From positions 10,775,186-10,839,185 of the forward strand of contig OZ199839.1 of the NCBI GenBank assembly GCA_964304625.1: 64,000 bases of DNA. The letters run 5' to 3'. The notes under the pieces were generated by a model that did no database searches, was not told the origin of the DNA, and saw only the letters and a program-made list of their open reading frames with translations. Made by a program: the position numbers and the translations under genes. Shown here piece after piece: positions 2,497-62,272 of the stretch. The stretch is from Kudoa neothunni. Taxonomy: Eukaryota; Animalia; Cnidaria. Every line of letters begins with the position of its first letter. Positions within the stretch are counted from its first letter, which is position 1.

Positions 2497-3841
<1,345 letters not shown>

Positions 3842-3958
3842 TTAAAGTATGAAAAAGAAAATTTGATCCAAATGTGTCAAACTAGATCACAGGTTACTGA
3901 AATTGCGTACGCAACCCATAACACACGTCGTGTAGCGTGTGTTGCTTTAACACGTTAT

Positions 3959-4600
3959 TTAACACTAGTAAGTACGCCCAAAAATATTACACTACTGCAA
4001 ACAGGGTCCAATGGACTCAGTTTGTAAAATGAGATTTTATGTTTGTTAATGTTTTATAAATATTCTAGAAACCAGCATAAATTTATTGTTAAGCTTTTTT
4101 AAATAAATAATATAATGATTTATAGTCAACCTACAGAAATATGAAGAAAAACACACCATTACTAAAAAAACGACAACATTGAAGAATTCAACCAAATCAT
4201 GGGATTTATAATAAAAAACAAATAATTAGTTCCAACTGTAACAAGAACAGAATAATGTTGTTCACACACATTTTGCCTGCATTTAGAGTAGATAGCATTT
4301 GTTTTTATATGTGTTGAGCATGGGGAAAAATGGCATCTTTTCTTGTCACCACTCCCATTATATTTCGGCAATGTTGAAAGTGGAAGATCAATTTTATCGT
4401 TTACGTTCTTTTCAACAATCTCATCAATTAAATTTTGTAAAATATTGACGTCTTGTTCTGCTTTTGTATTTTAGTATGAATTCTTTATATTTATTTAAAT
4501 GCACAATCATTGAGTTGTAACCAGCGATGTCATGGATTTTGGAAAAATATTGTGGGTGACTATCTGAGAGTTTTTCCTCTTACAATGTCGAATTTTTCGA
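3959..4600 (-). mobile_element. piggyBac remnant, 3' end (C-terminal Cys-rich domain and terminus)
   Basis: Minus strand reads STCKRKTLR*..IFF...DIAGYNSMIV, then KKRCHFSPC...TNAIYSKCRQNVCEQH (piggyBac cysteine-rich domain). TTAA followed by CAC at 3959 marks a likely terminus. Confidence 0.75.
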
Positions 4601-6021
4601 GTTTTCCGGTAATCATTTTGATTGCATCATTAGCGGAAAACTTAATGCACTACTAATCGTTACACGAGGTCAACAAAAGATTAATCTGTTACCATTCCTA
4701 ATTATTATTTTTAGAAAATATTTACAAACGTCCATAATTTGATTCGTTATAAAAATTTAATGATATAACTAAACTAACATAACAAAGAACAGAATATGGA
4801 ATGATTCTTCCTTTAAAGTACATGGAAAGAAATAACTAAAAATTAAAAAATTTTATTTTATATTAATTTTTTTAATAAACATAGTAATCTTCATATTGGC
4901 TTATAAAACATATTTTGGATTTTGGATTTTGAATTTGTTTTGCCAAATTATTTTGTTGTAGTCTACGTTATTACTTGAAAAATTACGATAATAACTAATT
5001 TTGTTGTGCATACAACTTAATCTCCTTCTTAAAACATTCGACAACTAGCATTACATTGTGCTTATTTAGGTCCTCTTATCAATATCGCATATTATGATTT
5101 GAATAAAAAGTTTTAAATATATTAAAGTTTTAGTTTTTTTTCAAATTAATTTTAATTAATTTATGATAAAGAATTGAAAGATTCTATGGATAGCTAAATA
5201 TTACAAAAATCATTTTCCATGGATATTTATAATCTATAAATTCTTGAAATTAGAATAAAAAATATTGTTTATCATTTTTAGTTCAATAATATACAAAAAA
5301 ATAATTTACTACAATTAAGTCGCTTTATTTGATCAATTTATACTTGGAGCAAAAAGAGGTCTACTGAACCTTTGTGTAACATTTTGAAAAAGCTGATAAA
5401 AACCATACATAAAGGGAAAATTATTTTTGATTCCAATGAATATAATTCCATTAAAATTATGATATAATTTACGTAACATTAATTTTCTTATATAGAATAT
5501 CCCTATAATTTTATATGAATTTAATTAAATTTTGGACCAAAAATGGGCCCACTGAGCTTTCTAGGGTTATAGTAAAGGGTAAGATATTATTATTAATTTC
5601 TCTATATACGATGTACATTAATGTTAAAATCTGCCGTTGTACTTATACTTGGAAAAAAGTATGTAACTATAATCTTATAGAGGCGAGACAACTAGGGGAG
5701 CCAATTGAGTATGATTTATGATGAAAATCATATTTGTTGTGGTAAATTTTCTAATATATTTGTTTTTTGCTGTATGACTAGATTATAAATATCAGTGTAA
5801 ATTCACAAGTATCTAAAATTTTTCTGATATATACATTGATGTTACGTTGTTAATAAATTTTATAAATGATATTTTCTCTATCAGTATAATTTCGCATTTT
5901 ATTATATATCGAATTAGAATGTTGATGAGTACATCACAAATATTTGTATTTGTTCTAGTAAAAAGCTGAAAATACTTTTATATTATTAAAGATATCTGGG
6001 GAGGGGGTCGACAAAAAAAAA

Positions 6022-6035
6022 TTTGGAGACCCCTA
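6022..6035 (-). mobile_element. Isolated hAT-like terminal inverted repeat fragment
   Basis: tttggagaccccta, reverse complement TAGGGGTCTCCAAA, resembles hAT/Charlie-type termini. No partner end was identified. Confidence 0.3.
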
Positions 6036-7057
6036 TTGTAGACTATTAATTTATATGATTTCTTCAAGATTTTTTAGGCTATTCGCAACAGTCCTATCCA
6101 GCGATTTTGGAATAGCATCGATTTTTATTGAGACTAGCTCAAATCACTTCTTAGTAATTGAATCTAGTTATTAATGCTAAATATTTTATATGTCGTATAA
6201 GATAATTTAAGTAAATTTAAACAATAGTTTTGGCCAATATAAATTATAATAACGAATTGGGTTCATGTCAAATCGTTTACACATTAATCTTCCCATGATC
6301 ACTATCACGTTGATACATTGGGTGATAGAATGGTTACTAATCCCCCGAAACTGTGAAAATAATGTGTAAGAATATCACATTCAATTTGACTCTTTATTCG
6401 GCACGATCATATAGTAAACATATAATGCTGTTCAACCTTCTAAGTGTAGTGATGAATTTTTAATCTTCAATTTTATATATCAAACTCAGAAGTAATTTTT
6501 TTATATTGCAAGTTATCTCGTATTATTTTATCTTATCTAACTAAAAAAGTAAACAAACAAATTTATTTATTTATTCGAAAACAAAATTTATACACAAACA
6601 CCCTCCAAGTACGTTTAGGGTATTTTTATATCCTGTACGCTTTTACTCAAAATGTTTTAAAATAAAATTTTTTTATTCTCTGTATATTTTTTTTTTACTG
6701 ATTTCAAGTCTCTTATTCTCTAGTGAGGCTCCTACAATCGATCGATATTTTTGTGAAAATTATCCAATTGATTTTGATTTCGTTTCTTCAATGCCTTTAC
6801 GGATGACATTTAGAGGATAAACTAAAGTGTTTTTACAGTTGTATAATTGACTCCTGTTTGATAACAATGTTGTAATATTGTATTATATTTTCCTTCTGTT
6901 ATTAGATTTAATTTGTTGTCATTAAATTTAATCAATTTTTTAAAACAAAATATGGCAAGAAAAACTTCGTAAAATAATAAATCATGTGATCAGCTTGACT
7001 TTAAATAGGAATGGCTGTTAGCTCGGTAAATAATATTCAAGTGACGCTAGTTTTTGA

Positions 7058-7118
7058 CTACGTTCAATTATACCTGGCCCGCCGCTACGCTCTTGGGGTC
7101 AGGAATAATTAAATGTAG
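7058..7118 (+). other. Imperfect 23-bp inverted repeat / hairpin
   Basis: ctacgttcaattatacctggccc pairs with gggtcaggaataattaaatgtag. As + strand RNA it has 2 G-U pairs and 2 mismatches, with a 15-nt loop. Confidence 0.75.
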
Positions 7119-10022: not shown

Positions 10023-10772
10023 CGCTTCAATCAACCACTCCTTGATTTAGAATGTGGTGCTTGCGCATACTCCAATAACAAAAATGCGACTTAACGCTGT
10101 AAGCACTTGAATTCGACCAAATACTAATTTATCTTCAAGTACCACTTAGAAAGATCATATAAAAATTCAAACTCTAAATTTAGTTGAAAAATATAATATA
10201 GCATCTATTTTAATATATGTATAAGATTTACAGTTATTTAGTTGAAAAAAATTTGAAATTTTAAGCAAAATTGATTTCCTTATTAAATTATAATTATCGC
10301 GATTAGCTAACTTAATGATACTATAGTAAGGTAATTGATATTACGCATTTATTCGGGTAAACGCGCCTGCGCACTAATATAAAAATCAGTGAATTTTGTG
10401 TTGAACTAATGCACTCTTTATTAAAACTCACAATACATACATACATACTTATATGAAATAGCTCTGAGTTGTTTTTAAAGTATGAGTTTCGATATAATAT
10501 TTATATGAATGAAATGTGAGATTATATTGTATGTGAGGTGCTTTAAATAACCCTTTTTGTATGTTTTCCGCTTGATTTAACACCGTCGGAATAGTGGAGC
10601 AAAATTGGGGTTTATATAATAGTTGGAAACTCAAATAAGGTCTAATCGAGCGTTGTCGGTATCAAATAAACTTTTGATATAAATTAATGAAAATGGGATC
10701 GTCGTTTATTTTTGTTGAATCTTTATGACTCATATTTGACGAGTGTTGAGAAATATGTGTTTCTGATATTAA

Positions 10773-13591
10773 CCCTCTAACGGACTTTAGGGTCTGTAGT
10801 GTCATGTTGGTAGATTAACAAACCATTCGATAGGGGGCGTAATTATTATTATTGTTATTATTATTGTTGCTTTGTGGTGTCTCTCTCTCTCTCTCTTGCG
10901 TTCACAGTATGTAGGACCCCCTGTTTTTTGGCTTAATCTAATTAAATAATTATGGAAATGTGATCCTTGAATCATCACAAAATTCCATCTACACAATATT
11001 TATAAAATCACACTTTACTTATTAAATTAATCCTCAATAATCAGATCTGGCGCTATTTTGCAGTCATGCGCAATGAATATAAATATGCAAATTTTGAAGG
11101 ATGTTAATCAAATAGGTGAAAATGCAGAATATGGTCAACACGTGCGAAAATAATCCACGTGGATTAACGAAAACCCCTCTAAAATGAAATTATTATAACT
11201 TGTTGCTTATCTATCTAATTACGACAGCGTATTAAGTTCTTGTTTCAAAAATAAACTTGAAAGCTGGCGCCAAATGTTTGTCCTCAATGTGGAATGCAAA
11301 GGAGATCAATCAATTTTAATTATATTGACTATCTCATATGGAGTTGTCGTTTAAATGGTTGTAACACAAAACTTTCGATATAATCCAATTCATTTTTTAG
11401 CAATTCGAAGAGGCCATTTTCAAATATTGTTCTTTTTATTCATTTATGGGTGAATAACTAACCATCTGGAATAATAATTAATGATTTTGAGTACGCATCC
11501 CATACAGTAGTGGATTGGAATCGTTTCATAAGATCATTTGGTGTTGATCATTACGAACGAAACCTCATCGACAAGATAGGAGGACGAAATAAGATTGTGG
11601 AACTTGATGAAACCATCATTGTCCGACGTAAATATAATCGCGGAAGAGTTATATACGAACAATGGCTCTTCGGAGGGATATGTCGCAAACAAGATTAAAA
11701 CCACAGTTTTGAAACTTTTGTTGAGTTCGTTGACGACAGAACGGCATCAACTCTTATTGGAATTATTCAGTGATGGATTGAGCTAGGCACTACTATTATT
11801 ACTGACGGATGGCGAGGTTACAACAATATTGGGCAACTTGGGATGAATCATTTTGTAATCATGCATGATGAAAACTTTGTTGATCCAGAAAATCGTGAGG
11901 TTCATACCCAAAACACTCAAAATCTTTGGCTACGTTTAAACGTTTAAAAAGGCTACGACGAGCCAAACGAACCCATAGAAACCCCCATGACTGGCAATGG
12001 GAATACATTACCGAATTTTTGTTTTGAAAACAAAAGAGCATTTATTCAGCTCGCTAAAAAATGAGACAACTCTAAACTATAAATTTTAATTTATAAATTA
12101 TAGATTATTAGAGTTTTTATTAATCTTCCTGAATTATTTGCGCTTGCGCGGTTACTATCTACATTTTTACCCAGTTGTGTAATTGTGTATTAGGAGTAAG
12201 ATTACAATTTGAATTCTCACACACTAACAATGTGATATTTTCATCCTATCATTTCCGTACAAAATTTACCACTTTTTTTTAAGTTGAAATCTTATTTGAT
12301 CAATATATATTGGAATCAGTTCTTATGTAATTGCTTTCGTTTATAATTCTTTTCAATTGTTGGATGTACAAAGTTAAAATCAACTCATTTAAGAAATCAC
12401 ACCTTTACATATTTTTCTCTTCGAAGATATGTTTATATAGACACATTCAATCGACCAATTTTACGTTTAATGTATAGAACCCACCATAGGCCACATTCAG
12501 CTAAAATAGCTGAATTCATAGACATGTATTGCTTAAATGAGCATCTTCGTTTGAATATGCTCATTTAGGCTGCTTATCAACAGTAATATCTTCATTAGAA
12601 TACAAACGCAGTCAAGATTCCAGCCCCCATGTGTAAATATGTTAAGACTTGGACAAAACTTGCCTAATTTCATCCTTTCAGATCTGATATTTGATCATCA
12701 AAATATAGGTACCTTAATATTTACTGAAAACACTTGAAGAGAAAGAATACACATATGCTTTACGATCAACCGAATTAAATTATTCTAGCATAGGCTCTTC
12801 TCAGTCCTTACGTGCACCAGTTAAAATTAGGGTTCCAACAAATTCCCTCAGTCCAACTTCATCCATGTTGGTCTGAGATTTATGAAATGTAATTTCCAAA
12901 TTATATTAGCGAGCATTATTATCACCTGACAAACAGCAACAACAATAAAAATATATTGAAACTATCCAAAATGTGTTCTGGGTTCTCTACAAACAAAAAG
13001 CAATTGGGCTAGAATTACATTTCATGATATTCTAAACTGATTTCCTTGAAGATGGTGGCCAGCTTAGTTATAAAATTATTCCGCTTTTGTTGTTTGCAGA
13101 ATTTGTTGATAACTTAGCTATTGATATTTCATTCGACCATTTATATACTTCAATTGTTGTTTCATCAAAATCGTTACTAATAGATTGGAATTTGCCGCTG
13201 AAATAACGATAACGGCTCTTCGTTGTCCAAAACACCATTTATTAATAAAAAGGGAACATGTACTGAGTGAAACACTTTAAATGCTTCAAAAATTTAACTT
13301 TACCAATTAAAATGTTATTACTAAAAAAAATAAAGAGAATATTTTTAAATTAACTAATTTTTCTAGTTTATACACTGTGATTATAAGCAAATAACAACGA
13401 CAGATAACGGGGCTCCGGTGAATCTTTTCGTAACAAATTATCAAGGACTAACTCGTATAGTGATCACTGATTTTATTGATATTGTGTCGATAGAATTACT
13501 TAATATTCCATAGATCGCATTTTCCTAATTTTTCAATTAGATCAAGTCAAAAAAACCTGGGGTCCCACAGACTCCAAAGTCCGCTGGAGGA
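10773..13591 (-). mobile_element. Decayed piggyBac element with both TIRs, carrying nested insertions
   Basis: TTAA at 10769 plus ccctctaacggactttagggtctgtag matches the reverse complement of cccacagactccaaagtccgctggagg (about 13564-13590). Minus-strand remnants MDEVGLREFVGTLILTG and RCSFKQYM lie at about 12400-13250. Confidence 0.8.
11049..12158 (+). mobile_element. Merlin (IS1595/ISXO2-like) transposase pseudogene nested in piggyBac
   Basis: IGG.NKIVELDETIIVRRKYNRGR....QWLFGGI, then after frameshifts V.DRTA.TL..II..WI..GTTIITDGWRGY and ENFVDP....VHTQN. Element boundaries are approximate. Confidence 0.88.
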
Positions 13592-16199: not shown

Positions 16200-18510
16200 G
16201 ATATTAGTGTTATTATTACTATCATCATTTTCTTTTTTTCTCAAACCAATAACTGTTTGAAATACATCTTTTGGTCTACCTCTCAATTTCACTACTGTTG
16301 GCAGCTTAATTCCTATAATTTTATGAATTTAACAAAATGGAAAAAAGATACACACCCTTCAAAGATGGATTTTTAGTTGTGGTATAATCTACAATATTCA
16401 GGATCTCCATATCAGTTATTGATGATGGGACATTATCATTAACTGCTTCTAGTATATCCTCATTCTGTATTCGTGATTCCTCAGTAACTAAACACGAAAT
16501 AAAAATTCTACTAAAAAAATATCATTAATTAAATATTGGGATTGAACTCTCTTGATTGTTTTCGTTGACAGATTTAGACGTCAACTTGAACTAAATTAAG
16601 TTGATATATGAATAGTGGAAAAAATAGTCACCTTATCCAAAGAATCCCCATTGGAAATAAGAGAGATTAATTCAACTAAAATCTTTTTTAATGAATTATA
16701 TTGACTCCCTGTTTTTTAGACCCTAGCGAAGCTATTTTCTTACAAAGAATTTCTAGCTCCCTGTATCGCTTAAAAGCAGAATTCGGAACGGGACACTGAC
16801 TCGAAATTTCTGTAATACTTGGTTGCACACAACACGAAGGATTTTAAAGATCTAAATTTTTGGTCATTATTTTTCTAGCGTAAATAATATGCCTACATGG
16901 TAACTCCATACTTACGTAGAAACAACATGTACAACTATTGGGATCAGGATTGGCATAGGATTCGATATGATTATTTATTTCATCCTGCATAATATTATAC
17001 GCATATGAAGTCAACAATGTTTTATATTGTTCATTAATGTCTGAGTTTAATTTCTCAACAGTTTGGGTTGTCCACTCTCTAACTGCTTTACTCTCACGTT
17101 CAGTTCTCATACTTGATAAATAAATAAGCAGACCGCTGAAAAAGATTTCAATAGTTGAAAATTTTTTTATGATTTGTTTCATTTTGGAATTTATGCATTC
17201 TAATCGATTATTAGTTCTATTTAAAAAAGCACCCTTTAGGTTCATGTATGCCGGGCACCATTCATGTTTGATTGGATCCCAAGATTTATTATAATAACTA
17301 ATGATTTTTTGTTACATGTCTTATTTAACAATTCATGGTGATTTTCTTAAATTTTTGGATCATCGGTATAACAAAGCTTTTGAATCAACTCTAAGGCAGT
17401 TTTTCTTTCAGCTTCGTTTATTCCCATTCTTAATCTAGAGATTTCTCTCCCAAATGTTCTTAAGACATGGTACAGGCATAAGTTTGTACTTTCGTTACGA
17501 AATACAGATCTTATAAAGTTTCTTTCAAACATGTCTTTATCCGTAATGAAACAAACTGTTTTGGTTGACATTTCCTCATTATGTTTAAGTAGAGATTGAC
17601 ATAACCAGGTAACAGTTACGGTACTCTCCTCAAATAAAAGAGCAATAGCTCCTATTTGACTTTGTCCAAAGGAATCGATAAACAGACATATATACAATGA
17701 CATACGATTATTGATTAATTTATAAATAGCATCCATAAATACTAGTTCGGGAAATTTTTTAATAACGTTTTTCATATAAAGGTCGGAAAAATATTCCAGT
17801 CATTTCATTGGATTATTGTGCAATATTTCGAGAGTTGTATTTGGGTGAGAATTTTTTATTGAATTCAACAACTCCGAAATATCAGATAAAACACTTTTTT
17901 AGTGTTTGGATATAATTATGGATTTGCTTCAAGGAAACCTTTTGTTGTGGCTGGTTCATGATTTCTACTTGTACTCTTTTTAAATTTCCATCATAAAAAT
18001 GAACATTTTTTATAAGATATTTTTCTTTCTTCATCTAATTTTCTATTCATTGGCAAAAAATCCCTAAAAGGCTCATTTCTGTTGCAGTTGTGAGTAACAT
18101 CCAATTTTCTAATAACTAACATGTTCATGTTTTTAGGAACTCGCATTGTAATGAAGAAATTGCAACCACTTTTATGGCTGTTGATTTTTCTCTTTCCAGA
18201 ACTTTTAGATTGTATCCGAATTCACATTAATTACATCAATGTTTATGTAGATAATTACATTTTTACCACCAATGAACACAACAAAAAGTGGCTTCATAAT
18301 AAACAAGATCAGAGTTCATGTCTCTATCAAATTTTTTTGGGGCAGTTGAGATTTTTCTAGAGTCTCGGATCCAGTAACAAAAGTTGTTCGGCTTTGAGTA
18401 CTTATCCATGAATTTTTTAGCCTTTTCAAAGTTTGTAAATGCATTTCCGACCTTAGGGCCTGATGTAGTATCCTGAATTAATAGTGTTTGATCAGATTCT
18501 CCTTCCACAG
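16200..18510 (-). mobile_element. Decayed MULE/Mutator transposase (FAR1/ZSWIM3-type)
   Basis: F..F.......Y......YWIRDS N-terminus; FPELVFMD..YK, FITDKD..ER.......F......LCLYHVLR, TNNRLECIN; SWIM finger CTCCFY....LPCRHI; KLRGRPK near the end. Multiple frameshifts. Confidence 0.88.
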
Positions 18511-20040
18511 GATTCTACTCGCGACTATCAACGTTACAACCGCACGCCAGAGGTTATTTTACTCGTTTATGGTGCTGTAACACAACATTAGATTAATTAC
18601 GAAAATAATATAGATTATAAATAATTTAATGTCATTTATAATGATACTTATGAATGAGTTTACAATATCCTCGATGTATTTTGATGATTAATTGTTAACT
18701 AAAAGATAAATGAAACTAAATTTATATTCTACATTTATAAAAGATATTTTAAGAGAAAAATCGCGTCCGACAAAATAGACACAGCCAAAAACCATTTTCA
18801 TGCAATATATTATTCTTGATTGCAAAAAAAAAATGGGAATGAAAGGATAAAGTAATTATACAAAAATGAGTGATAAAAATAGGGGGAATACAGTTATCTT
18901 TCGATATTAAGTGATTTATTAGGACCAAGAAAAAAAATACGCAATAACAAGAAATTTCATAATATCGGGACTTTACTATAGTTCAATCATAAAAAATTTT
19001 TAATAATTTTAATCGGAACATTTTAGTTGAAAAAATATAATTTGTCTAACTTTGAAGTAATATTCATTTTACATTTTTGAGCTCTAAATTAAGTGTGAAA
19101 TTTACATTACCATGTATAGATGATAAAGTGAGCGTTCATTACGTCCCATGAGGTAGTAGTCGAGTTTTTACACAGGAAGCACTGTTCTAAAATAATCAAA
19201 TCCGATTATAAACAAAATATATTAAATTCCTTAATAATGATAAAATATCATTTAAAATATACTTAATATACTATTTTAACCTTCCGATTGTCAATAAAAC
19301 GGATTTATTAATTCTTCTGGAGGTTGTAAGCAGGGAAAAATATTCTATCTGGTTATACCAACGTTGACTATATGAAGTTTTTAAGTTGTTTATTTTCGTT
19401 TTCTAATTTTCAACACTTCTATAAACATCCGTATATAAATATATAGTGCGGTACCTATCGATACAATACATTGGTCCCGTAATAAGATCAATTTTAATTA
19501 GATGAGAATGGTATTTTAAATCTTTTTTCTATCAATCAGACATCGATTTCTACAAAAAGCAATAAAGCTTTAAACGTTTAATACAGAAGTTTAAAAACTC
19601 AATAATGCTCCTAGTGCAAAAATGCTTACAATAAACTATAATAAATTACGATGCGCGCGCATAAATGCCTAATCGCTCAATTAAAATTTTCTTTTTATCT
19701 GTTTAACATGCGCAAAATATTGGTAATAAAATATAATTAATTTTATTCATACGAAATTGCATTGAAATATTGCCAGTTTTTTAATGGAGTTAATGGAATC
19801 TCCTTACCCAATATTATTCCGTACAAATTAATTAAAAAAGTTACCTGCTTCTCAAACTAGTTTAAAGTGCATCAAATGTAAATTATTTTTGCAATTGAGA
19901 GGGCTTGATCGAGCATATTGAGTGAGATATTCATTAATCTTCGGGGATTTAGGTTTGATCAAACACGGATAGATAAGCTAAGCGTTGCAGCCAGCATTTC
20001 ACTGAGATTTAGTCATATATGCAGGTATAGTGGGTTCGAG

Positions 20041-21775
20041 ATGGCATTAAAGTAATATTGAATCTGTTCGTATTCATCTCGCGGTGGATATGTTTGAATA
20101 ATTCATTGGAAATCATGTCAAATTTAGTTCAATCAATGCAACTCGAAATAAAATAAGTAATAGATCAAGGAATGATCTTCTGATATCAACCATAAATGAT
20201 CCTCCGGTGATTTCCTTGTCAAGACTTCAAAAAATATGTTTTGGAGGTAGAGCTAGACATTGAATTGTTGTTTGACACCACTGATCCAAATGACTATTTT
20301 AGGTATAGGAGAAAGTGAAAGTTTGCGACCTTTGTGTTGGAAGGTGATGCGTGAATAAGTTTTAAAAAATAATTTTAACTATGAAAATTCATCATTTGTA
20401 GTTATTGTTAAATTATTTGCCGCTGAAAAAAAGAGAGTGGCCACAATTTTTGGAACAACGGCGGAATAACTACTTAGAATTTGTAAAAACATTGATTATC
20501 GATCTTTCTAATGTATCCGCACAATGCTTACCAAACGATGATGTACAATGAAAAATTGATTGATTGATTGGAAATTCACATTATTAACATTACACCCATC
20601 TAGCCTCTCTCACAAAGAGACGACAGCAAATGGAATGTGTATTTCGAAGACAACAAAATTATCTCACAAATAACGAGCGATTGCATGTAATTCATCGCGA
20701 ATTTTATTGACTAAAATACTATTTTTAATAGTCGAATATGCCCTGGAATGGCCTTTTTCCTCAACGAAACCACACACCCATTATCACTCCTGTCGGGTAA
20801 TGCTAGCGAGTCCTGGCCCCTCTTCCAAATATTATGTCAGGTGGAATTAATTGTTTGCTCAATTTAGGTAAGAAAAACGTCGATGGAATACTCAAAAAAC
20901 GTATCAGTCCAACAACGTTGTCCGAATTTGAAAGTTATACCACGATTTCATCAAACAAAGAATGCCATTGGGAAGCTATATCACGCATTCTCTTTGTCTA
21001 CGCCAAACTCAATCAAGGAGTCAAATATGTGCAAGGGATGAATGAGATTTTGGCTCCTATATATTTTGTATTTGCAAATGATAGAGATCCTACATCGGCA
21101 AGTAGAATTTGTTGCTATCTTGTTTGATTGACTCAATCAACCTCCATTACCATAGAGTATGCTGAATGTGATGCATTTTTTTGCTTTTCGAATTTAATGG
21201 GAGAAATTGTGGATAATTTTATCAAAGTATTGGACAACAATATCAACGCAGGGTCCGGACGGTTGATGCACAATTTTATGTGTAAACTAAATGAGCTGAG
21301 ACCTGATCTTTATGTACATCTCACAACAAAGGGAATCAAACCCGAATTTTTCGTTTTCCGTTGGCTCACGCTTCTCTACTCACAAGAATTCAAATTGCCT
21401 GGTAAGCTGCTCATCTGCCAACAATACTTGTAAATTCTCGTTGTGCGGTTTTAGATGTAATTATGTTATGGGATACATTGTTTTCGGACCCTGAACGTTT
21501 CGAATACATATACATTTTCGGTGTTTCAATGATCAGGTAGAATTCAACTTTTTTTATGTTGTAGTAGATTTTTTAAATTCTTAATTCTAGTCTACTAGAA
21601 GATGTTATTGTCAACGGAGATTTTGCTTCAATTTTAAAAAATTTACTGGTACTATGTATTTTATTGTTTAAACCTCAATCTAATTTAATAGAATTTTCCA
21701 ACCCATCAATTCGGATTTGAAAATATACATAAAGTTGCGCTGGAATTTTATGCACCTGCTTGGGAGTTGAAATAA
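20041..21775 (+). CDS. TBC1D13: Rab-GAP TBC domain protein, TBC1D13-like
   Basis: Multi-exon model: LRPLCWK|LLLNYLP, arginine finger ITSDCIRICPGMAFF, HWEAISRILFVYAKLNQGVKYVQGMNEILAPIYFVF, AECDAFFCF, FRWLTLLYSQEF.LPDV..LWD.LFSD. Stop at 21773-21775. Confidence 0.9.
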
Positions 21776-26695: not shown

Positions 26696-28586
26696 GGAGA
26701 TGCTAAAGGTACTAACGGGTTTAAATTTGGCCACGTGATATGTTCGAGAAGTATATTAAACCATTCATCTTGGTTCAAAAAAATCTTAATGATTCTATTT
26801 TATTGCATTTTTAAAGTTATTAGCCGTGTAAGCATTGTGAGTGACTTGTTTAAATTTTAGGGGGCGCTCCTTAGTTCTCGTAAATTTAGTCCTCAGCGTG
26901 TTTTATGTTCTCTAATTATTTTTAATTTCAAAGAAGTTCATCTAATTTCACGAATAAATCGATATTTGGCTTAATATACATATATTTTGTTCTATGTAAT
27001 AAATTGAAGTTTTAAGTCCCAGCATGCATTCGCGCACGCGCAAATGCATCTAGGATTTAAAACATTCCCGCGTCAAAAAGTTCATAATTTTTAACAAAAA
27101 ATTAGAAAACACATTGGTTGTCGTTTTGAATAGTTCTGGGACCTTGGATAAATCTAGGGCTTTCCGTCCCGATTGGAGGTCCAAGCATCGTAACGTGAGT
27201 CAACGAAAAAATTGTATCGCGAAGAAAGCTTTAAACTTAATCAGAACCTCATTCGAAAGTGTATCATGTATCAAGTACGATTTGTGAGCAATTGAATCTG
27301 AAAAAAAGTCCGGTAAAAAATCTTCGATTGATGAATTTTACTGAAAATTTTACTATGTTTTAAATCTAATATTTTCTATTTAATAATATAAACATAAATA
27401 AATTATTGAATTAAAATTTTAGGATCCAACGTTGAAAAATTATGTTTTAAAATTGGTTAAATTTATAAAAATTGTTTATTTATATTTTAAAGTAAACTAT
27501 AGGCGGAGTAAGAATTAAATTTTAATTATCGTCAAAATTAAATTGTCAGATTTTTCAAAATTCCTGTAATCTTCATGTTCCAAGTTCAAGTAAATATCAA
27601 CTCGAAAATTTCATAAACTAAAAATTTAGATTCAAGGTCGGGTCCTATGTTTATTTCAATCAATTAATTTTTGTATTTACGATTAAATTAAAAAAACTAC
27701 AACATCGAATTGACGCGCAGGCGCGAATACAGTACCAGATATTCTTCTTTAAAACATTTAACAGCAAAATTATTTTTAATTTATGATTTATACATATCTT
27801 TATCTATACAATGAGGTTTTTACGATTAAATTATTGTTCAACAAAACAATAAAGAAGTCAAAACGTTAAATTTATTATCTGTTGTATCTATTTTATTCGA
27901 ATTAGTTTTCTCGTTATAGTAGACTGCTTTTTTTATTTTCCATGTAATTGAAGTAGAAATATTTTCCCTTTCTGAAAATAAATTCGTTTTTTAGTTTCAT
28001 TTTCGAGAAGATGTGTAGAGTACTCCTGATAAATGGACTGAGTGCAGAAACTAAAATGAATCGAGAAGCATTAAACTTATCGATTTACTCGGTTAACGGG
28101 AATGAAATTGATAAGTCCATGTATTTGATTTTTACAACAGACAACGGACTATAATCTGGAGGTCAAGTGTTCTATTCTCGGTCCTCATACGGCATTGCTT
28201 CTGCGTTGCGAAGTCATACTCCAAAATGAAAGCTTAGGTTAAAATGTTTGCTCAATATTAAGTGTGGTTATGGTTATTACATCAGATGCTATTATCTATT
28301 AGATGTATCAGTAAACAATTTAACCCTCATCCTAAGGTTTAAATTTTAATCACAAAATAAATTAAAAATGTAGAATTACTCTATAGTGAACGTATCACTT
28401 TTATTATTAAATAAAATAACGACAATTATCGAGTAAAATGCTATAAGATTCATAATTTTGATTAATTTGGTGTTACAGTCTTAGTAGAATAAATTAGAAG
28501 GTGAAAATGAAAAATAAACAGAAACAATGAATATTTTTGAGCGATTGAACTATCGTTGTTTCAAAATCACAATAAACATATTCAAT

Positions 28587-30117: not shown

Positions 30118-30137
30118 TTTTAGAATGAACCCCGAAT

Positions 30138-30149
30138 TGCGCATGCGCG
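30138..30149. promoter_or_regulatory. NRF1-like palindromic motif TGCGCATGCGCG, about 20 nt upstream of the hnRNP ATG
   Basis: Near-exact match to the NRF1/Ewg consensus TGCGCATGCGCA in very AT-rich DNA. Related motifs occur upstream of other genes (see findings). Confidence 0.65.
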
Positions 30150-31158
30150 CCAATATATAACGGGTCGATATATTTGTCTCCCCATGATACGATACTTCAT
30201 GAAGAAATCATTATTTCCGTTAATTTTAATGATTTTTCCATTTTTCCTATTGAAAACGAATTAGATTTAATTTTTCGATCAAATAAAATTATAGAACGAT
30301 TTTTTTAATTTTAACATATTTTAGGACCGCTTAATTTAGTTGGGTAGATGACATCTCTTTTTGCTCCATTTAAAATCCACACTAAATGTATTTCTATTAA
30401 TTTGAGGGAGTAAGAAAATCCTCATAAAAAGGTGAGTTTTTACCTGTGGAGTTAATTTTTATTTTATTGGCTCTGAGACATTTTTTTTCTAAATTCTTAA
30501 TATTTTTAATAATTTAATATAAATTCAAATTAAATTATGTATATAGTTTGTGCAATATTACTTTTATTGAAAATATCAGTTTTTCTGGAATAGTACATTG
30601 TAAAATATTTGACCATAAATATAAATCGCTACTAAAACTGAGAACTTTATTTGTTGTCTAAAAATCCAAAAATCTAAAAATAGAAGGAAAGAATGAAATA
30701 AATTTTAAGATTATTAATTTTAATCCATTTTATTAGAACTCGATTTATTAGAATTAATTTTATAACGAATTTTAAAATGATATTAATTTAATGGGTATTA
30801 AAAATTTTTAAGTAACTCCAATAGCAGTTGAAATAAGACAATTTACATAAATAATATTTTCAGCAATAATTTTGGAAATAAGCTGAGATGATCGTGTGGT
30901 TTATCAAATACCTGGGGACTCAGATAAATTAAATAATAAACAAACCTAATATTTAATACCTGACATTTAAATTAATTTAAATAAAATTTTATTAAAATAT
31001 TGAATCAGTTTTATGTTAAATTCTATAGAAAATTTGGTTCGAATAACCATTTTATGACTCTCTTGATATACGATTCTAACTAATGTTATGATTAAGCTAG
31101 TAAACCCATTCTATGCGAGTTTATGTTGGACAGTCCCATTATTATTGATTAATATAAA

Positions 31159-42360: not shown

Positions 42361-42436
42361 TTTTCCGTTAATGCGCGCAAAACCCCGACATTTTATTATA
42401 CAAAAATCAAACCAAAATAATTATGTTAATTTATCT

Positions 42437-43074
42437 CTATTCATTTGGGATATCCAAGATCTCATTATCTGTATTTTCACTTGACGATGGTTGCACTTGG
42501 GGTGACTGTGGTGGTGCAGGATTTAATACGTTTATTTGGTCACAAATTCGTTGTTCCTATTTGATTATTGATTATAGATTATAGATTTCAATACAATAAT
42601 TTCCTCAGAAAATCATTACTATAGGTGAGGTGAGTGATGAGAGTGAAAATATTCTGTCTTTTTCTTGCAAAGCATTTCTCAGAATTGAAACATCTTGACT
42701 AAAAAATATCAAACAATGTAAATTAAATTAGAAGCAAACCAACTGAATACCTGGTATTGTTGAATATATCTTCAATTTCCATGGTGGTGTCTTTGAACAG
42801 CATTGACTCCTGAAGATATACCGTCTCCAGCGCGTAAATTTGATGCTCTAATTCTTGCAGCGATTTCTATGATATCAGTGAGTTAATTCTTTGTATTGTT
42901 TTAACATAAACTGCAACTGAAACATTTCGTTCAGCTTTCATGATAAAATATTCAACCATAATCACTCACTTCACAATGTTTGCGTTCTTTAAGTAGTTTA
43001 TCCAGAGTTTCTATATTTGGTGATGCATATAAAAATTTCTTATCACGCCTGTTGTTACTAGATTGTGATTTCAT
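42437..43074 (-). CDS. MEAF6: NuA4/HBO1 acetyltransferase complex subunit Eaf6 (absent from the ORF track)
   Basis: Four short exons: ..LDKLLKERKHCE|KSLQELEHQIYALETVYLQES ... EKDRIFSLSSLTSP, matching Eaf6 motifs LE.QIY..E..YL and DR.FS.SS.TS. Stop TAG at 42437-42439. Confidence 0.85.
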
Positions 43075-45196
43075 TTGTTACAAAACGAATTAATCAATTT
43101 CCTAGAGAGTCCTTTTTTAACTTCGGCTCCTTTCGGAAATAGCCGACATAAATTTTTGTCATTATTTTAGTGTAATTTAAATTTATTATAAACATCGGAT
43201 ATATGTTTATAGATAGAAATAAATTGAAGAGTTTGAATTTGGTTTTTTACTGGTCTTTGTATATCATAAAATGAATATGAATTATACTTAAGAAAGTAGA
43301 AATTAGAATTATGACATGTTTTAACCCAATAGATATTTTTTGTAATCCGAATTAAGTTATTTAAAATTGTGGAAATCGTTAACTGGATTATATTAGCGTG
43401 GAATTATAAACTGACAAATATATTATTTTGTAATTTTCGCATTTGCGCGGGAGAGAATGTAACAGAATTTACTTTTGTTGGAAATTTCCGCGTCGTTCGA
43501 CACGGTTAAATTGTTGAGATATATGAATAATTAATTTATGTATTTTTTATTGCGTTACATTTAATGGGAACATTGTTTTTCGCAGTTTCTGATAAATTTA
43601 TGAGTAGTTTTTATTTAGTAAAAAATAAAAAATATAAAATTGATTATAAATAATTTCAGGTATTGGATTAAAATATGGAGAACAAAAAATAACATGACAT
43701 AACTGTTATGATCCAAAATTACATTTTTTATTATGTCCCTATATTGTCACATCCAAACAGTGGAACGTGCTGACATCCTTAATAAAATATTAAATATTAA
43801 TTATTAGATTGGTATCGTTATTCTATATAATACGACCAGTTTAACTTATATTTACTAATACAGTCATTATCACCTTAATTCAATTATATTATTCATTATT
43901 ATATTGGTTTTGATTCTTGCGCGACACTAAAAATAACATTATTTAATCAACACTGATAATAAATGGCAACAATACAAGACTTACGAAACCACATTTACCT
44001 AATAATTTTAATTAAAATTCAGTTAAATTAAACAATGATATAAAATTTAATGGAATATAATAAAAAATATTTTCTGTAATTAAATGTTATAATAAATAAA
44101 ATTAAAATTCAAGTGATAAAAATCATGTATATTTTTGTTTGGATTTATTAATCATTGTTTTATTACCTTCGTTGTCGCCTCAAAAATTAAATTCGAAATC
44201 CACTTTATCATATTTAGGGTATGCTAGCCTGGTTTGAGCTTTGAAACGTTATATTAGGTTGTAAAATCATAAATAGAAATTAAAATTGATATTGAAAATG
44301 AAATAATTTGAAACCGTTGTGTAAACAAACATAGAGGTCATACTTTCTTTATAGTTAGAGCTATAGCTATAGCTACAGCTAGAAGTGTGGATTTTGCACT
44401 ACAATGACCTCGGATTGAACCAAAGTAGTTTGCTCATACAAACATCATTGATAGGGTCCCAATTAAGAACCAAATTAATTGTAACATTCCAGACAACTAT
44501 ATATATCCAGGTATGTAGACATTCCCTATGTTTCTCCTACATTTTTGCTTTAAAGCTCATCAAATATAGGCTTTCTCGTGGTTATTCTAGCTTACTTGGA
44601 CAAAATAAATAATCGTATATTTTTCTGCATTCATGATTCCAAATTACTTTGAATCAAGTAATAATGCACTTTGAGGATTTACTTTAATAGTAAACGTTTA
44701 ACACATCCTTTTGAGTTAATTTTATTATAAAAGTTTATTTTTTAAAGAGGTGACTATCACCTTTATCGAATTAAAAATACAAAAATTATTGTATAAAATC
44801 GTCCTTGATTAATCGGATGAATCGATCACTATAAATAAAACTATTTAATTCTGTTTTTAATTCTTTGCTGTCTAAAAATAACAGAAAAACTAAGTGATTA
44901 TTCTTACGAAACGCACTATTCAGGCAAGGTTGGTTATAATTATATTTAATTATTCGTAATCTTCAAGAGTGTGAAAGTATTTCAGAATAATGTAAAATAA
45001 TTTAGCGTAATTTATTATTAAAATTCATCAATGTATATCGACTATAAAATAAGATATGTAAACATTTAAAATACCATGCGCGCGCACGACATTTTAGCTT
45101 TAATTTTCCATGGGTGAATTGTCGCAGCCTATTAATATAGTAGATTAATTTATAAATTTGACGAATTTATTTAGTTCCCAGTTTACCTCTGTTAAT

Positions 45197-46500
45197 ATAC
45201 AGTCGTGTCTCGATATTGCGTAATATTTTGGGACCGGGGAAAAATTACGCAATATTGAGTCAACTGCGCATGCATAATAACTTCGAATTTAACATTTATT
45301 GCAAAATTACTCATATACTTTATATTTTTATTTATTAATTGATAATTTCGTGTAAGGCATTTTTAACATGATGTACACAGAATAATTCAATAGGATTCTC
45401 AATGACACGTTTTTCGAAGATTTATAGGATTTTATACTTGAAATGTTGTAACGATTTCATCGTTGTGTATTAGAGCAGGATCTTTACTCCAAAAAGTAAA
45501 TTTATCTTGATTCTTTTAATTTTAATTTAAATGTAAAATTTCACTTTCTTCCAACAAAATAATATCATTACACATTATTATCTATACATATGAATATTAA
45601 AATTTTTCTTTTAATTACTTTATAATGTTATTTCATCATCACATTACTTTAAAGTTTTCTCTTAATAATTTTTCAATAAAAATGAATAAAAAATCAATTA
45701 TTTTTGTTTGAAAATAGATGGCTTATTAACTTAATTACTAATTTTTTAACCGTAGCCATTCTCACGTATTAAAGCGATCAAATACGACATATTTAAAAAT
45801 TTTTTAGTGCTTCCCTCCGAAAGCACATTTACGCACAATATTTTACTCTAATTGGCTTTTAAGCGGTGAATTATTCCCAGATATATTGGTTGCACCACAC
45901 ACGCAGTGTTTTTGATAGAAGTAGGAGCTGGATGTTTTTGAAATAACAGATCGATTAAGGACAATATGAGCACTGTTATAATAAAATAAAAACCTTCCTG
46001 TTATCTTGAATGAACCCCTGGTTCATATCTTGGTGGATCTGATAAACATAGATAAATATAATCACACATTCATTTGCGAATGGCACCAAACTGAAAACTC
46101 GTTCAATCCCCTAATACAACGATTTTTTATGAAATTTGAATATTATGTGTAATTTAAACTTTTAATCGGTCATTATAGAAATGATAAACATCGTAGCACG
46201 CTTTTGAATTGTTTTACACCCTTACATTGTGATAATTCTTAATAATGGACGTACGCTGTATAAGCTGTTCATAAAAATTAGCCATCTTGACAATATCTTG
46301 TGAAAATTTCTGATCCATAGATAAATATATTTATAATCAGCGCTCTCTTTCTCACTGCGATTTGAATTTGTCAGACTGCAAAGCCTTCCGCAATTATTAA
46401 ACTAACCTACGGTTCCACTAAAATATTTTATTCAAATATCTTTGGCAATAATACAAGATTTTTCGATAATTAAAAAAGTTAGATAGGTTTTTTCTCGCAT
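45197..46500 (-). mobile_element. Decayed pogo/Tigger-like transposon
   Basis: TA followed by CAGTCGTGTCTCG, a pogo-like terminus, at about 45197. Minus-strand remnants RKVFILL*QCS and NTACVVQPIYLGII..LKA resemble DDE_1 motifs LLLDN..H and NTT..LQP.D.GII..LK. The far boundary is uncertain. Confidence 0.6.
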
Positions 46501-47754
46501 TGAAACTACTCCATTGTAGAAATTATTTTAATATCTTTATATTTTCGGGCTTAAAATATTTAAAAAATATGTTAGTGAAATTTTTTGGAGATAGAGAAGA
46601 ACTAATTTTAGGAATTAACGTAAAATTCCGGTTCAAAAAACGATTTTTTAGTAGTGGAGTTTTTCCCCTTTTACTGTCCAAGTGGGCTCGTGGAGCCCAC
46701 AGGTATCTTTTATGGGTTAAAATAGCAGATCCTTTATTTTTAATTGGATATAAATATTTATTGTAGGATTTAAATATTTATCATTAAAACACAATATTAT
46801 GTATATTATTTAATTATTTGTAACTCAAATTCCAGAAAAAACAATAATTCTAATTTAATTGCGCTTTACTAATTATTTTTTCAATAAATTATCAAAATTT
46901 GTTATAATTTTAGTTGTATGAAATATAAATTAATATTTTTGTTCGACTTATTAATTTTAATTTTGTGATTAGTTAATAAATTATTTATTGAGTAATCATA
47001 ATAAGTATAAAATGGTTTTTATTGCTGTGATGACTAATATATTTATAGAATTTTATAGAGGTTTAAAAATTAAACATTGGGAGAATTGTTTATTTAGTAG
47101 AAACGATCATTAAATGAACATTTCAAGCGAAATAATACAACTGACGCAGTGAGATAATAATTTGCAGCATTCAAGATTATGACTTTTGAAAATATAAAAT
47201 TTAAATGATTTTTCATCACCAAAAATAAGCTTCTGCATTTTTCATGAGATAGAAATACCTACGTCTAATTAAATCATATTCAAAATAGTACTATCACACA
47301 CACTTTTTTAATATAATACAGCGTACACATCATTGGATATAAAATTGAGTGTATCCTATTATCCTATTGTGAGCATGTACAAGTTTTTTATAAGTTGAAT
47401 GTTATAATTATTTGAATGTAAAAGCAAAAACTTGTATAACTGGTAATTTTAGTTTCCTTTATATTTCTTGTAATAATTAAATTAACAATTTTTAATATTT
47501 GATGATTAGAAAGAAGGTTAAATTGCAGAATAGTAGCTGTAATCCAAATCAGCGACAACGGACAAATACGAACCTGTTGAATATTTTATTACTGAGTATT
47601 TATCAATTTCGCATCTCCAATAGGGCAACTTTGACAACAGCTATTTGTCGTCACAATAATAGTTGATGTTATCTATTAATTGTTACACTTCTAGCTCCTC
47701 GCGATTATTTCAACAGATTGTACCGCTAATTAAGCCGGTTCGAGTAAAGCTTGC

Positions 47755-47784
47755 TTTATTTATTTATTTATTTATTTATTTATT
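47755..47784. repeat. (TTTA)n microsatellite
   Basis: Direct reading. Confidence 0.9.
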
Positions 47785-48301
47785 TTAAAATTGAAGTTGG
47801 AAAACTCTGATTTTGATGGATTATCACAATCTGTCCTTAATGATTATCTATAGTTAAATCTATGTCCAAAATAAAAATAAATTTGTATTTTATGCGAGTA
47901 TTAGCTAATTAATTGTAGTAAATGCACAATGGTGATATCGAAAATAATTTGTTATAATTAATTCAGTCATTCCCATCATTAAATTCTCAATCAATATCAT
48001 ATTAATTTAATTTAAAATATGTAGGATTAATGTACAAACTAATTATAATCTTTAAACAGAAAATGCGGCTACTATTCTACATTTTAAGCTATTTTATAAA
48101 TGAAAAATTGTTTTTCTTATTACATATTAATTTCAAATTTTAATCATGAGTATTGCCTCAGACATAATAAAAAAGGAATTTTTCGGATGATCTTTCGTTA
48201 TTTAGTAGAAAATTAATTTTCTTCAATTAAGGAGTATTTTTATTACAAAAAAATAAATATCAAATTTTTTGTTTTAATGATGTCAATAAAATTCCCGCAA
48301 A

Positions 48302-60378: not shown

Positions 60379-61033
60379 CGGTAACTTATGGGTCATGCGC
60401 AATTATGGTTCATGTGTAATGATTTTTTTCATAACTGCGAAGATTATGGCTTTTGCGTCGATAGGCTGTGAAAAAATTCTAACTCTATTTCAAAAGTTGA
60501 ATAAATGAGATATTATCAAAAATTAAGGAGTAAATCAATGGCTAAATTTGAAACAATGAATATCTTTAATGTAAAGGCAAGGTTTGCGTTGAATATTACT
60601 ATAAACATCTCGAATAATTGTTTTAACCTTAAAAAGAATTTTCTGTTCTAACAAGAAAATTTCTCAAAAGGAGAAAATATGGATTTTGATCTGCAAGTGG
60701 AAGAGTAGATTGAGCTGATGAGAGCAAAAAAGAAAGAAGATTCTCAATATGTTTTTATTAATAAAGCTAATGAATTCCTTATGATACTTCCAAATCCGCG
60801 CCTGTTAAAATAATTTGATTTATGATTTAATAAGTAGATTTAACATTTCGCATAATGCATTGTTAGTGAATCATCGAAATTTAATTCGTGTTCCATTTGA
60901 ATGAATATAAATATTAAACTAAGTAAGTATGCTAGTTGGTCAGAATATAACCTAATTTTTTATTTAATTTCACACGCACAAAGTTACGTGCCGTGCGTAA
61001 TAATATTGATTACGCACGGCCCATAAATCACTG
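60379..61033 (+). mobile_element. Internally deleted pogo/Tc1-mariner-type element with TIRs and TA target duplication
   Basis: TA|cggtaacttatgggtcatgcgcaat at 60377 versus the reverse complement of the right end, TA|cagtgatttatgggccgtgcgtaat (TA at 61034-61035). The internal remnant VEE*IELMRAK..KANEF resembles a CENP-B-type HTH. Confidence 0.75.
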
Positions 61034-61307
61034 TATTTAAACAGATCACTCTTTATTCCTATGTATTTTATAAGAACGCAAATTCTCTGTCTATTTGTTT
61101 ATTTTATTTCACAAAAATATTATAAATTTGGTTATTAATAACATTAAAAATAAATTCTTTAAAAAACGACATTTAAAATTTAAATAATGGTTTCTAATCC
61201 AAATTCAAATTCTATGTGATAAGGTAAGATGTTTTTCTATTAATCAATCTCATAAATGACTTAAGTTATGAAATTCTCTTTCAAATTGAACTTTTATTAG
61301 TTTATTA

Positions 61308-61344
<37 letters not shown>

Positions 61345-62272
61345 GTTTTAAAACAAAAGTTCAAAAGCGATAATTAAACGCCCCCTCACGATTTTTACTG
61401 GTGCTTCATCTATCCGCGTCTTTCAAATCAATAATTAAGTTGTGCGAGGTATCCCTCTTGGGCACCGTGTCTTCATTTTACTTTTTTGTATCATTCATAA
61501 TTTCAGGTAGTTTACTTTTATATATTTAGAATTTTTGTTTAAAATTATTGACATGATATTCAAATTCTTTTGCCTTTTATTTCTAGATGAGAAAATAAAC
61601 AAAAATAAAATGCACACATGGAAATTGTTTGTCTAAACATTTTTATCCGGTTTTGTTTCAATTCAGATATAAAGTTTCTTAGTATATAATTGTGATTTTT
61701 ATGATGTAATATCATTTCAATCCACACATACCACCAAGTATGGATAAATAATCAGTGAAGCGAGCTAAATATATTATTTAGCAATAAAATTTCATTTTTA
61801 CACATTATACAATGATCTCCAATTTAAACACCATAGAAATTTTAATATTAACTCTAAAATATAATTTTCGAAGTTAAAATATTTATATAAACAAACAAAC
61901 AAATAAATCAATTATAATTTTTCAAAAATAATTGTTGGTAATTATGTGTATTAGCATACAAACTAGAATTCAATTATGTTCATATCGTATTTTGACTAGA
62001 TTTGCTATTCAGACAGTAATTAAACTGATGGATTTAATGAAATAAAATTCAGTGGAAAATCTGCGAAAATAGTCGTAATAATGTATGTTTATAATAAGAC
62101 GAATCTAAGTGGAACAATATTTGATTTGGAAAACTTAATATCTATATAAAATAAAATAAAACTATTTTATGTTAATACACGCGTATCTTTAAACATTTTC
62201 AAGGCAAGCATAAAAATGCGCGGTGTTTACTAACAGAAGCGCGCGCAATCTGTCGTAATCCATATAGGATAG

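Follow-up and report, generated by a model that had tools for sequence, protein, structure and literature searches.

GCGC palindromes resembling NRF1 promoter elements upstream of genes in the AT-rich genome of Kudoa neothunni

Short GCGC-rich near-palindromes recur in a 64,000-nucleotide stretch of AT-rich DNA from the cnidarian Kudoa neothunni (hereafter the window), and the locus raises the question of which factor, if any, reads them and which genes they mark. The obvious candidate is nuclear respiratory factor 1 (NRF1), whose sites are found in vertebrate CpG-island and housekeeping promoters. A sequence-only reading of the window had proposed an NRF1-like motif that serves as a one-motif promoter code for housekeeping genes, separate from the regulation of host-facing genes. 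The words are most probably binding sites of the genome's single NRF1/EWG/P3A2-family factor, and the motif is an NRF1 promoter element of the ordinary sort, here found in a new and very AT-rich genome, not a new code.

The GCGC motif family and its enrichment

The NRF1 consensus GCGCNTGCGC/YGCGCAYGCGCR, in which a 2-bp spacer separates two TGCGC half-sites, is matched perfectly at two sites in the window, 27031 and 30138 (Table 1). All ten strings named in the sequence-only reading are present at the positions it gave, and the single class it made of them is heterogeneous: in addition to the two perfect sites, the string at 10363 is one mismatch away from the consensus, those at 19651, 42371 and 62239 are variants with a zero spacer or overlapping half-sites, and those at 10059, 19707 and 43438 are single half-sites. 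The sites at 3903 and 43438 fail the palindrome consensus, and the word at 3903, TGCGTACGCA, does not contain GCGC and is a different palindrome from the type to which it had been assigned; it is enriched in its own right, with 57 genomic copies compared with 10 for a palindrome of matched composition. The original list lacked two full sites, those at 12139 and 27714. Searches of the window for Rfam families and tRNAs returned none, and no nematode SL1 was detected.

Table 1. Candidate NRF1-type sites in the window and their neighbouring genes
Positions	Word	Type	Neighbouring gene (ATG, strand)	Distance upstream of ATG
3903..3914	TTGCGTACGCAA	palindrome without GCGC, other half-site spacing	ABCF1-like (3670, minus)	233-244 nt
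10062..10067	TGCGCA	half-site	SRRT/ARS2 (10022, minus)	40-45 nt
10362..10373	CGCGCCTGCGCA	full site, one mismatch to consensus	SRRT/ARS2 (10022, minus)	340-351 nt
12139..12150	TGCGCTTGCGCG	full site		
19651..19714	ATGCGCGCGCAT + CATGCGCA	zero-spacer variant + half-site	RabGAP-TBC (plus)	
27031..27042	CGCGCACGCGCA	perfect consensus, within longer palindrome ATGCATT...AATGCAT	polyprenyl synthase, PDSS1-like (candidate 26695, minus)	337 nt
27714..27725	CGCGCAGGCGCG	full site		
30138..30149	TGCGCATGCGCG	perfect consensus	hnRNP A/B-type RRM (30055, minus)	83-95 nt
42371..42379	ATGCGCGCA	overlapping half-sites	PPIL4 (42360, minus)	12-19 nt
43438..43449	CGCATTTGCGCG	single weak half-site	MEAF6 (43074, minus)	364-375 nt
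45077..45276	TGCGCGCGCACG + TGCGCATGCATA		stretch without recognisable coding sequence	
62217..62246	TGCGCG, then GCGCGCGC		coiled-coil-like (62273, plus)	27-34 nt (GCGCGCGC)

The recurrence noticed in the window extends to the whole genome, where the family lies far above chance. In the window, GCGCNNGCGC occurs five times compared with an average of 0.02 over 100 dinucleotide-shuffled versions, and the 12-mer with at most two mismatches occurs ten times compared with 0.84. Across the genome, GCGCNNGCGC has 856 copies compared with 218 for its reversed control, CGCGNNCGCG; YGCGCAYGCGCR has 396 strand matches (191 + 205) compared with 51 (24 + 27); and ATGCGCGCAT and TGCGCATGCGCG have 41 and 55 copies compared with two and one, respectively. 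The control CGCGNNCGCG is itself well over its zero-order expectation (~10), and G+C-rich words cluster generally in this genome. Loose GCGC clusters are estimated at 2,300-5,200 genome-wide. Among over-represented 8-mers in a repeat-masked sample of 264 kb, the top nine are all members of the NRF1-type GCGC family.

Enrichment is strongest for the exact NRF1 consensus forms, with a preference for flanking T and A, a 2-bp spacer and GCGCA half-sites. GCGCA is present on one strand in 56 of the first 63 GCGCNNGCGC sites listed, where base composition predicts ~36, and the spacers TA, GA/TC and CA/TG are nearly absent from the GCGCNNGCGC sites listed; this bias and the spacer pattern agree with recognition of TGCGC half-sites (PMC10810270). 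The zero-spacer and overlapping variants TGCGCGCA and GCGCGCGC are also common in the genome.

Position relative to genes and conservation in relatives

Exons were searched singly, one after another, and a Pfam search of the short first exons gave no significant match. Several neighbouring genes were recognised: the exon at 25883-26350 (minus strand) matches the Pfam polyprenyl_synt family (E 9e-28), and searches against PDB sequences align the first exon of the hnRNP A/B-type gene with the N-terminal RRM1 of hnRNP A2/B1 and A1, and that of PPIL4 with residues 1-22 of human PPIL4 (E 6e-5). The TBC domain of the RabGAP-TBC gene lies in the exon at 20807-21124, and the earliest recognisable TBC-type coding sequence, at ~20290, is more than 500 nt from the site. 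The proposal that the motif sits 10-400 nt before start codons holds for the distances at SRRT, hnRNP A/B, PPIL4, the coiled-coil gene and MEAF6; the ABCF1 palindrome falls within the range, yet is non-canonical, and the tie between the site at 43438 and MEAF6 is weak. A site lies 12-95 nt upstream of five verified ATGs, namely those of SRRT, hnRNP A/B, PPIL4, NOP2 and the coiled-coil gene. The PPIL4 site lies within a 76-nt spacer that follows the MEAF6 stop codon (42437-42439), and is so near the ATG that it may fall downstream of the transcription start, or PPIL4 may be co-transcribed with MEAF6.

Position was analysed more broadly in the 264 kb together with eight 3-kb loci. Long coding ORFs contain 15-18% of random positions but none of the 24 GCGC clusters examined, and repeated DNA likewise contains none of them; the nearest confident exon is directed away from the site in 18-19 of the 24 (p 0.002-0.02). 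The length of ATG-opened ORFs within 60-250 nt of the sites is the same as at random non-coding positions (p 0.33-0.60), a comparison without power because first exons are only 28-50 codons long, and seven of the eight perfect 12-mer loci (L001-L008) have no obvious start codon nearby. A k-mer classifier of the transcribed strand, which is right for 85% of known gene blocks, gives a weak signal at the sites (p 0.03-0.13). In so AT-rich a genome, codon log-odds yield few and noisy exon calls, and a bootstrapped splice-site set, being dominated by noise, was left out. Three RNA runs labelled with the species placed no reads on positions 26001-32000 of the window and are uninformative on expression.

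Three orthologous promoters were compared across species. Upstream of SRRT, the half-site is TGCGCG at 34-39 nt before the ATG in one relative (L032) and TGCGCA at 24-29 nt in another (L033), words that are scarce elsewhere in their contigs. The SRRT orthologues share 41-43% protein identity and their flanks cannot be aligned, yet the half-site 24-39 nt before the ATG is kept in both, an outcome with a chance probability of ~0.001. An exhaustive search for further SRRT relatives yielded one close cluster only. In one relative, the NOP2 orthologue is not preceded by a GCGC word; an E-box that adjoins the NOP2 site is conserved there.

The NRF1 factor and competing readings of the words

A search for the NRF1 DNA-binding domain (PF10491) returned one locus, with E-values of 4e-53 and 5e-22, and the gene is single copy (G000:C2:4313831-4314551, minus strand). 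Its product matches the human NRF1 structure 8K4L with an E-value of 2e-50, and R206, N242 and R244, the base-contacting residues of human NRF1 (PMC10810270), are all conserved. The description of the motif as NRF1-like is thus borne out, since the consensus, the preference for GCGCA half-sites and the 2-bp spacer agree and the factor is encoded with its contact residues conserved. An NRF1 homodimer would bind the two TGCGC half-sites, with GCGCATGCGC as the ideal site. Chance very rarely produces GC-rich words in unmethylated DNA of 30% G+C, so that a short site in the non-coding stretch immediately 5' of a gene would suffice as a promoter mark. Binding of NRF1 to the sites, activation of transcription and the positions of the starts are what we infer from these sequence comparisons.

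The resemblance to NRF1 sites might be coincidental and the words recognised by a different binder of CpG-rich words, such as an E2F-like, CXXC-type or lineage-specific protein. Many copies are non-canonical (TGCGCGCA, GCGCGCGC, GCGCAAGCGC), TGCGTACGCA is enriched without being an expected NRF1 preference, and an E2F-like TTCCCGCG lies ~30 nt from the site at 27031. NRF1 itself, however, tolerates spacers of 0-1 bp in vitro with a loss of affinity of just 2-5-fold (PMC10810270), and the top enriched forms are the exact NRF1 consensus including its flanks, the 2-bp spacer and the GCGCA half-sites. The E2F word GGCGGGAA seemed enriched, but in the sample it consists mostly of six copies belonging to one repeated gene family, for which reason it was dropped as a promoter word. 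As the contact residues of the NRF1 orthologue are also intact, a different binder is improbable.

It is less credible still that the words are non-regulatory, whether as by-products of mutation or recombination, as transposon ends or as cruciform-forming sequence. The general clustering of G+C-rich words (218 copies of CGCGNNCGCG against ~10 expected) would fit such an origin, as would the proximity of some sites to transposase-like ORFs, both piggyBac-like and ISXO2-like (C1:1.0-1.2 Mb) and at the window site 12139. However, enrichment depends on the order of the word and on its flanks (41 vs 2; 55 vs 1), coding DNA is avoided, the orientation of flanking exons is biased, and the SRRT site is kept across species. 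An origin from transposons was rejected, as the sites are unique sequence, repeated sequence holds none of the 24 clusters, and the two ISXO2-like transposase regions are unrelated, with no mutual similarity.

A further possibility accepts NRF1 sites and takes them as the sole promoter code of housekeeping genes, excluded from host-facing, surface and secreted genes, which would be regulated apart. The dominance of the NRF1-type family among over-represented words in the 264 kb is in keeping with this, and a half-site lies within 100 nt upstream of four of six checked conserved genes (SRRT, hnRNP, PPIL4 and NOP2) compared with none of six lineage-specific genes (Fisher p 0.03), a contrast drawn from a tiny sample whose genes were selected with the motif already known. 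As had been reported, TGCGC and GCGCA are absent from the 400 nt upstream of the starts at 31159, 34217, 36351, 48302, 49861 and 58497, genes whose surface or secreted label is the putative classification of the sequence-only reading itself. The start at 58497 has one isolated GCGC, 225 nt upstream. Several observations count against the code: the ABCF1 and actin starts lack a canonical site, NOP2 has a conserved E-box beside its site, the motif-less class includes an EHD-like GTPase that is hardly host-facing, and a half-site is present at one Kunitz-family paralogue. The 856 strict 10-mers, or an estimated 2,300-5,200 loose clusters, also speak against a sole code for housekeeping genes. A one-motif code that splits gene classes is therefore unlikely, and plain NRF1 promoter sites are preferred.

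Relation to known NRF1 systems and significance

It has long been known that animals from sponges to mammals carry the NRF1 motif at their housekeeping promoters. The sites described here resemble those of vertebrates in their consensus YGCGCAYGCGCR, where 2 bp separate the two TGCGC half-sites, in the conserved contact residues of the factor, and in their location 5' of RNA-processing, nucleolar and mitochondrial genes (SRRT, hnRNP, PPIL4, NOP2 and polyprenyl synthase). Unlike in vertebrates, the background is 30% G+C and lacks CpG islands, with CpG at 1.01 times the expected frequency, the sites lie as near as 12-45 nt to the ATG, and the variants TGCGCGCA and GCGCGCGC are common. No C5 DNA methyltransferase is detectable in the genome, and with a CpG ratio of 1.01 methylation cannot gate binding here. 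In animals from sponges to vertebrates, the Nrf-1 motif belongs to the recognised core-promoter elements (PMC4773876), and in human cells it is preferentially located upstream of transcription starts (PMC11269187). In the sponge Amphimedon queenslandica, whose genome is likewise compact and whose intergenic regions are short, the Nrf-1 word is over-represented around transcription starts, and the factor and its site were argued to be older than the split between sponges and eumetazoans (PMC4773876). The commonest promoter word of A. queenslandica, however, is the Sp1/GC-box, and its starts have been mapped, whereas here the NRF1 family is the leading word of the sampled DNA. Drosophila Erect wing (EWG) and sea urchin P3A2 are members of the NRF1 family (PMC10810270), and have the same kind of GCGC palindrome as their target.

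The finding of the motif reveals no new mechanism. It is possible, if rather doubtful, that NRF1 is the main promoter-defining and start-placing factor in this methylation-free, compact and AT-rich genome, with its word 10-50 nt from the ATG and very short 5' leaders. If so, a whole promoter could be accommodated even in a spacer like that of 76 nt separating MEAF6 from PPIL4. NRF1-directed choice of start sites has reportedly been described of late for human CpG-island promoters, of which the NRF1-defined promoters here would then be a natural minimal version. The AT-rich, unmethylated background makes the site nearly noise-free, and the genome is therefore a clean natural system for studying the definition of promoters and starts by one activator. 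The NRF1 word could seed the annotation of promoters and gene starts in an unannotated, fast-evolving and compact animal genome, and the genome is a natural test of how far one ubiquitous activator defines the promoter and the start site.

Abundance of the GCGC word family and its genomic setting

The GCGC-containing palindromes and half-sites of the NRF1 type are no product of chance. The window has five copies of GCGCNNGCGC, where dinucleotide-preserving shuffles average 0.02, and 10 copies of the 12-mer when at most two mismatches are allowed, where 0.84 are expected. With the identical words reversed as a genome-wide control, TGCGCATGCGCG is present in 55 copies versus 1, GCGCNNGCGC in 856 versus 218, YGCGCAYGCGCR in 191 + 205 versus 24 + 27, and ATGCGCGCAT in 41 versus 2. 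An unbiased k-mer screen was performed on a 264-kb sample consisting of the window and 200 kb of another chromosome (L012-L031), with everything present twice masked; the top nine over-represented 8-mers all came from the NRF1-type word family, and GCGCGC and CGCGCGC ranked first among 6-mers and 7-mers, respectively. All 24 clusters with at least two GCGC in this sample lie outside repeated DNA. Perfect 12-mers on contig C1 exhibit mild clustering, with three pairs at most 1.5 kb apart among ~69 sites versus 0.6 expected.

The genome comprises 40.26 Mb in four contigs. G+C makes up 30% of the window (C2:10775186-10839185), where the CpG observed/expected ratio is 1.01. This undepleted CpG content is consistent with the outcome of a search of the whole genome for the C5 DNA methyltransferase domain (PF00145), which found none; cytosine methylation appears to be missing from the genome. 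Introns are plentiful in the window, and just eight of its ORFs reach 150 aa; its exons were searched singly, not as joined spliced models. Animal-type genes confirmed in it are SRRT/ARS2, a RabGAP-TBC gene, a polyprenyl synthase, an RRM protein, PPIL4, and MEAF6, the last identified by its conserved exon. SRRT exhibits only 23-25% identity with insect SRRT, and on this divergence the genome looks like a compact, fast-evolving animal type. The canonical nematode SL1 was looked for and was absent, and no RNA reads of three runs fell on 26001-32000, which constitutes no test of expression.

Mobile and amplified elements were also observed. A piggyBac-type transposase at 126-1226 (+) (Pfam DDE_Tnp_1_7, E 2e-35) extends over three overlapping reading frames and is probably a decayed copy. 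A ZSWIM1/3-like gene at 16847-18514 (-), with MULE transposase, RNaseH-like and SWIM domains, would be either domesticated or a transposon, and no NRF1-like word lies within 400 nt of its 5' end. On the other chromosome, one gene family is present in six copies with an identical 48-nt stretch around GTGGCGGGAATGCC (L012-L018, C1:1003611-1062372), and is a tandemly amplified family of secreted proteins; Kunitz-domain ORFs with near-identical N-termini are found in the same region.

Correspondence of the sites to NRF1

All 10 strings listed in the sequence-only reading lie where it placed them. The list is mixed and comprises three full sites, variants, half-sites and one different palindrome.

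Sites in the window and verified start codons downstream of sites
Feature	Position	Strand	Detail
Perfect consensus site	27031		
Perfect consensus site	30138		
Consensus with one mismatch	10363		
Zero-spacer or overlapping variants	19651, 42371, 62239		
Lone half-sites	10059, 19707, 43438		
Different palindrome	3903-3914		TGCGTACGCA, without GCGC
Full sites overlooked in the sequence-only reading	12139, 27714		
PPIL4 ATG	42360	-	First exon aligns to human PPIL4 residues 1-22; site 12-19 nt upstream
hnRNP A/B type ATG	30055	-	Site 83-95 nt upstream
SRRT ATG	10022	-	Half-site 40-45 nt upstream, full site 340-351 nt upstream
Coiled-coil-like gene ATG	62273	+	Site 27-34 nt upstream
NOP2 ATG	L020:5987 (other chromosome)		Site 43-50 nt upstream

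The different palindrome has 57 copies genome-wide versus 10 for a composition-matched palindrome, is 6-10 times commoner, and may represent an independent recurring element. The perfect site at 27031 is embedded in an extended inverted repeat (27020-27052, ATGCATT ... AATGCAT). NRF1-like words at 45077 and 45265 lie within ~4 kb without recognisable coding sequence (44400-48300), where no Rfam families or tRNAs were found.

In its crystal structure, human NRF1 binds GCGCATGCGC as a homodimer on two TGCGC half-sites, with contacts made via R206, N242 and R244, and spacers of 0-1 bp lower its affinity only 2-5-fold (PMC10810270). Among the first 63 GCGCNNGCGC sites listed genome-wide, 56 possess GCGCA on one strand versus ~36 expected from base composition. 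Among the GCGCNNGCGC sites listed, the common spacers are AT, AC/GT, AG/CT and AA/TT, whereas TA, GA/TC and CA/TG are nearly missing. T predominates in the 5' flank and A in the 3' flank. A search for an NRF1 DNA-binding domain, as suggested in the sequence-only reading, found one in the genome, encoded by two exons at C2:4313831-4314551(-) (E 4e-53 and 5e-22). It aligns to the human NRF1 chain 8K4L with E 2e-50, and the residue count in this alignment places R206, N242 and R244 as all conserved. Half-site preference, spacers and flanks all fit, and a factor with its contact residues kept is encoded; the word family matches the pattern of NRF1 sites and its members are predicted to be such sites. 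The 5' side of the NRF1 gene itself carries TTGCGCG, TTGCGCA and AGCGCA within 60 nt (L010:2305-2368), ~280-340 nt before its first coding exon, and the gene may be autoregulated via these half-site words.

Position of the sites relative to genes

The evidence on placement is indirect. None of the 24 GCGC clusters in the 264-kb sample lies inside a long codon-biased ORF, versus 15-18% of random positions (p ~0.01). The nearest such ORF faces away from the site in 18-19 of 24 cases, versus 47-52% at random positions. Orientation was tested under six exon definitions, of which five gave p 0.002-0.02; the sixth, which required exons of 80 codons or more, yielded 13 away versus 9 toward, with 2 within an exon (p 0.086). 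Other results are neutral or speak against placement at gene starts. The longest ORF that starts at an ATG within 60-250 nt of a site does not exceed in length its counterpart at random non-coding positions (p 0.33-0.60). No start codon is evident close to seven of the eight perfect 12-mer loci, and a k-mer classifier of the transcribed strand at sites gave a weak signal (p 0.03-0.13).

MEAF6 and PPIL4 lie head to tail, with 76 nt (42361-42436) separating the MEAF6 stop codon (42437-42439, minus strand) from the PPIL4 ATG, and this spacer contains an AATAAA and the TGCGCGCA word 11 nt before the ATG. The spacer may be a very compact promoter with an extremely short leader, in which NRF1 sets the start. 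Alternatively, the two genes may be co-transcribed, and some sites may lie within 5' leaders or co-transcribed pairs.

Relatives, gene classes and known NRF1 promoters

Two Logan contigs from relatives contain SRRT orthologues with 41-43% protein identity, and the upstream DNA of neither can be aligned with that of the window. In one (L032), 2.5 kb at 22% G+C holds a single half-site of this kind, TGCGCG, at 34-39 nt before the ATG, and the other (L033) possesses TGCGCA 24-29 nt before the ATG; the joint chance of both is ~0.001. Upstream of NOP2, an E-box, CACGTG, abuts the NRF1-like word (L020:5929-5945). A relative's NOP2 keeps the E-box 31-36 nt before the ATG (L034:789-794), and a GCGC word is absent upstream of it.

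The sequence-only reading had assigned the motif to housekeeping starts and found it missing from six surface, secreted or signalling starts. The latter indeed have no TGCGC/GCGCA within 400 nt upstream; an isolated GCGC is found 225 nt upstream of 58497. Of six conserved genes whose start could be checked, four (SRRT, hnRNP, PPIL4 and NOP2) have a half-site within 100 nt, whereas ABCF1 and actin have none within that distance upstream. The contrast gives p 0.03 in Fisher's test on a tiny number of genes, chosen once the motif was already known, and its class boundaries are soft, with an EHD-like GTPase falling in the motif-less group. The conserved NOP2 E-box contradicts the further claim of a one-motif code, as do the genome-wide numbers, namely 856 strict 10-mers and 2,300-5,200 loose GCGC clusters, the latter extrapolated from 24 in 264 kb.

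NRF1 sites are a well-known feature of broadly expressed vertebrate promoters. Core promoters of the sponge Amphimedon are also enriched in the Nrf-1 word, whose family is considered animal-wide (PMC4773876). In human cells, NRF1 sites show a preference for positions upstream of transcription starts, which they help to place (PMC11269187). Given these vertebrate, sponge and human sites, the present finding adds another case to a known kind. The unusual part is the setting, a very AT-rich, apparently unmethylated genome in which the sites are sharply distinct, and sites as near as 12-45 nt to the start codon, as in the MEAF6-PPIL4 spacer, are likewise counted as unusual.
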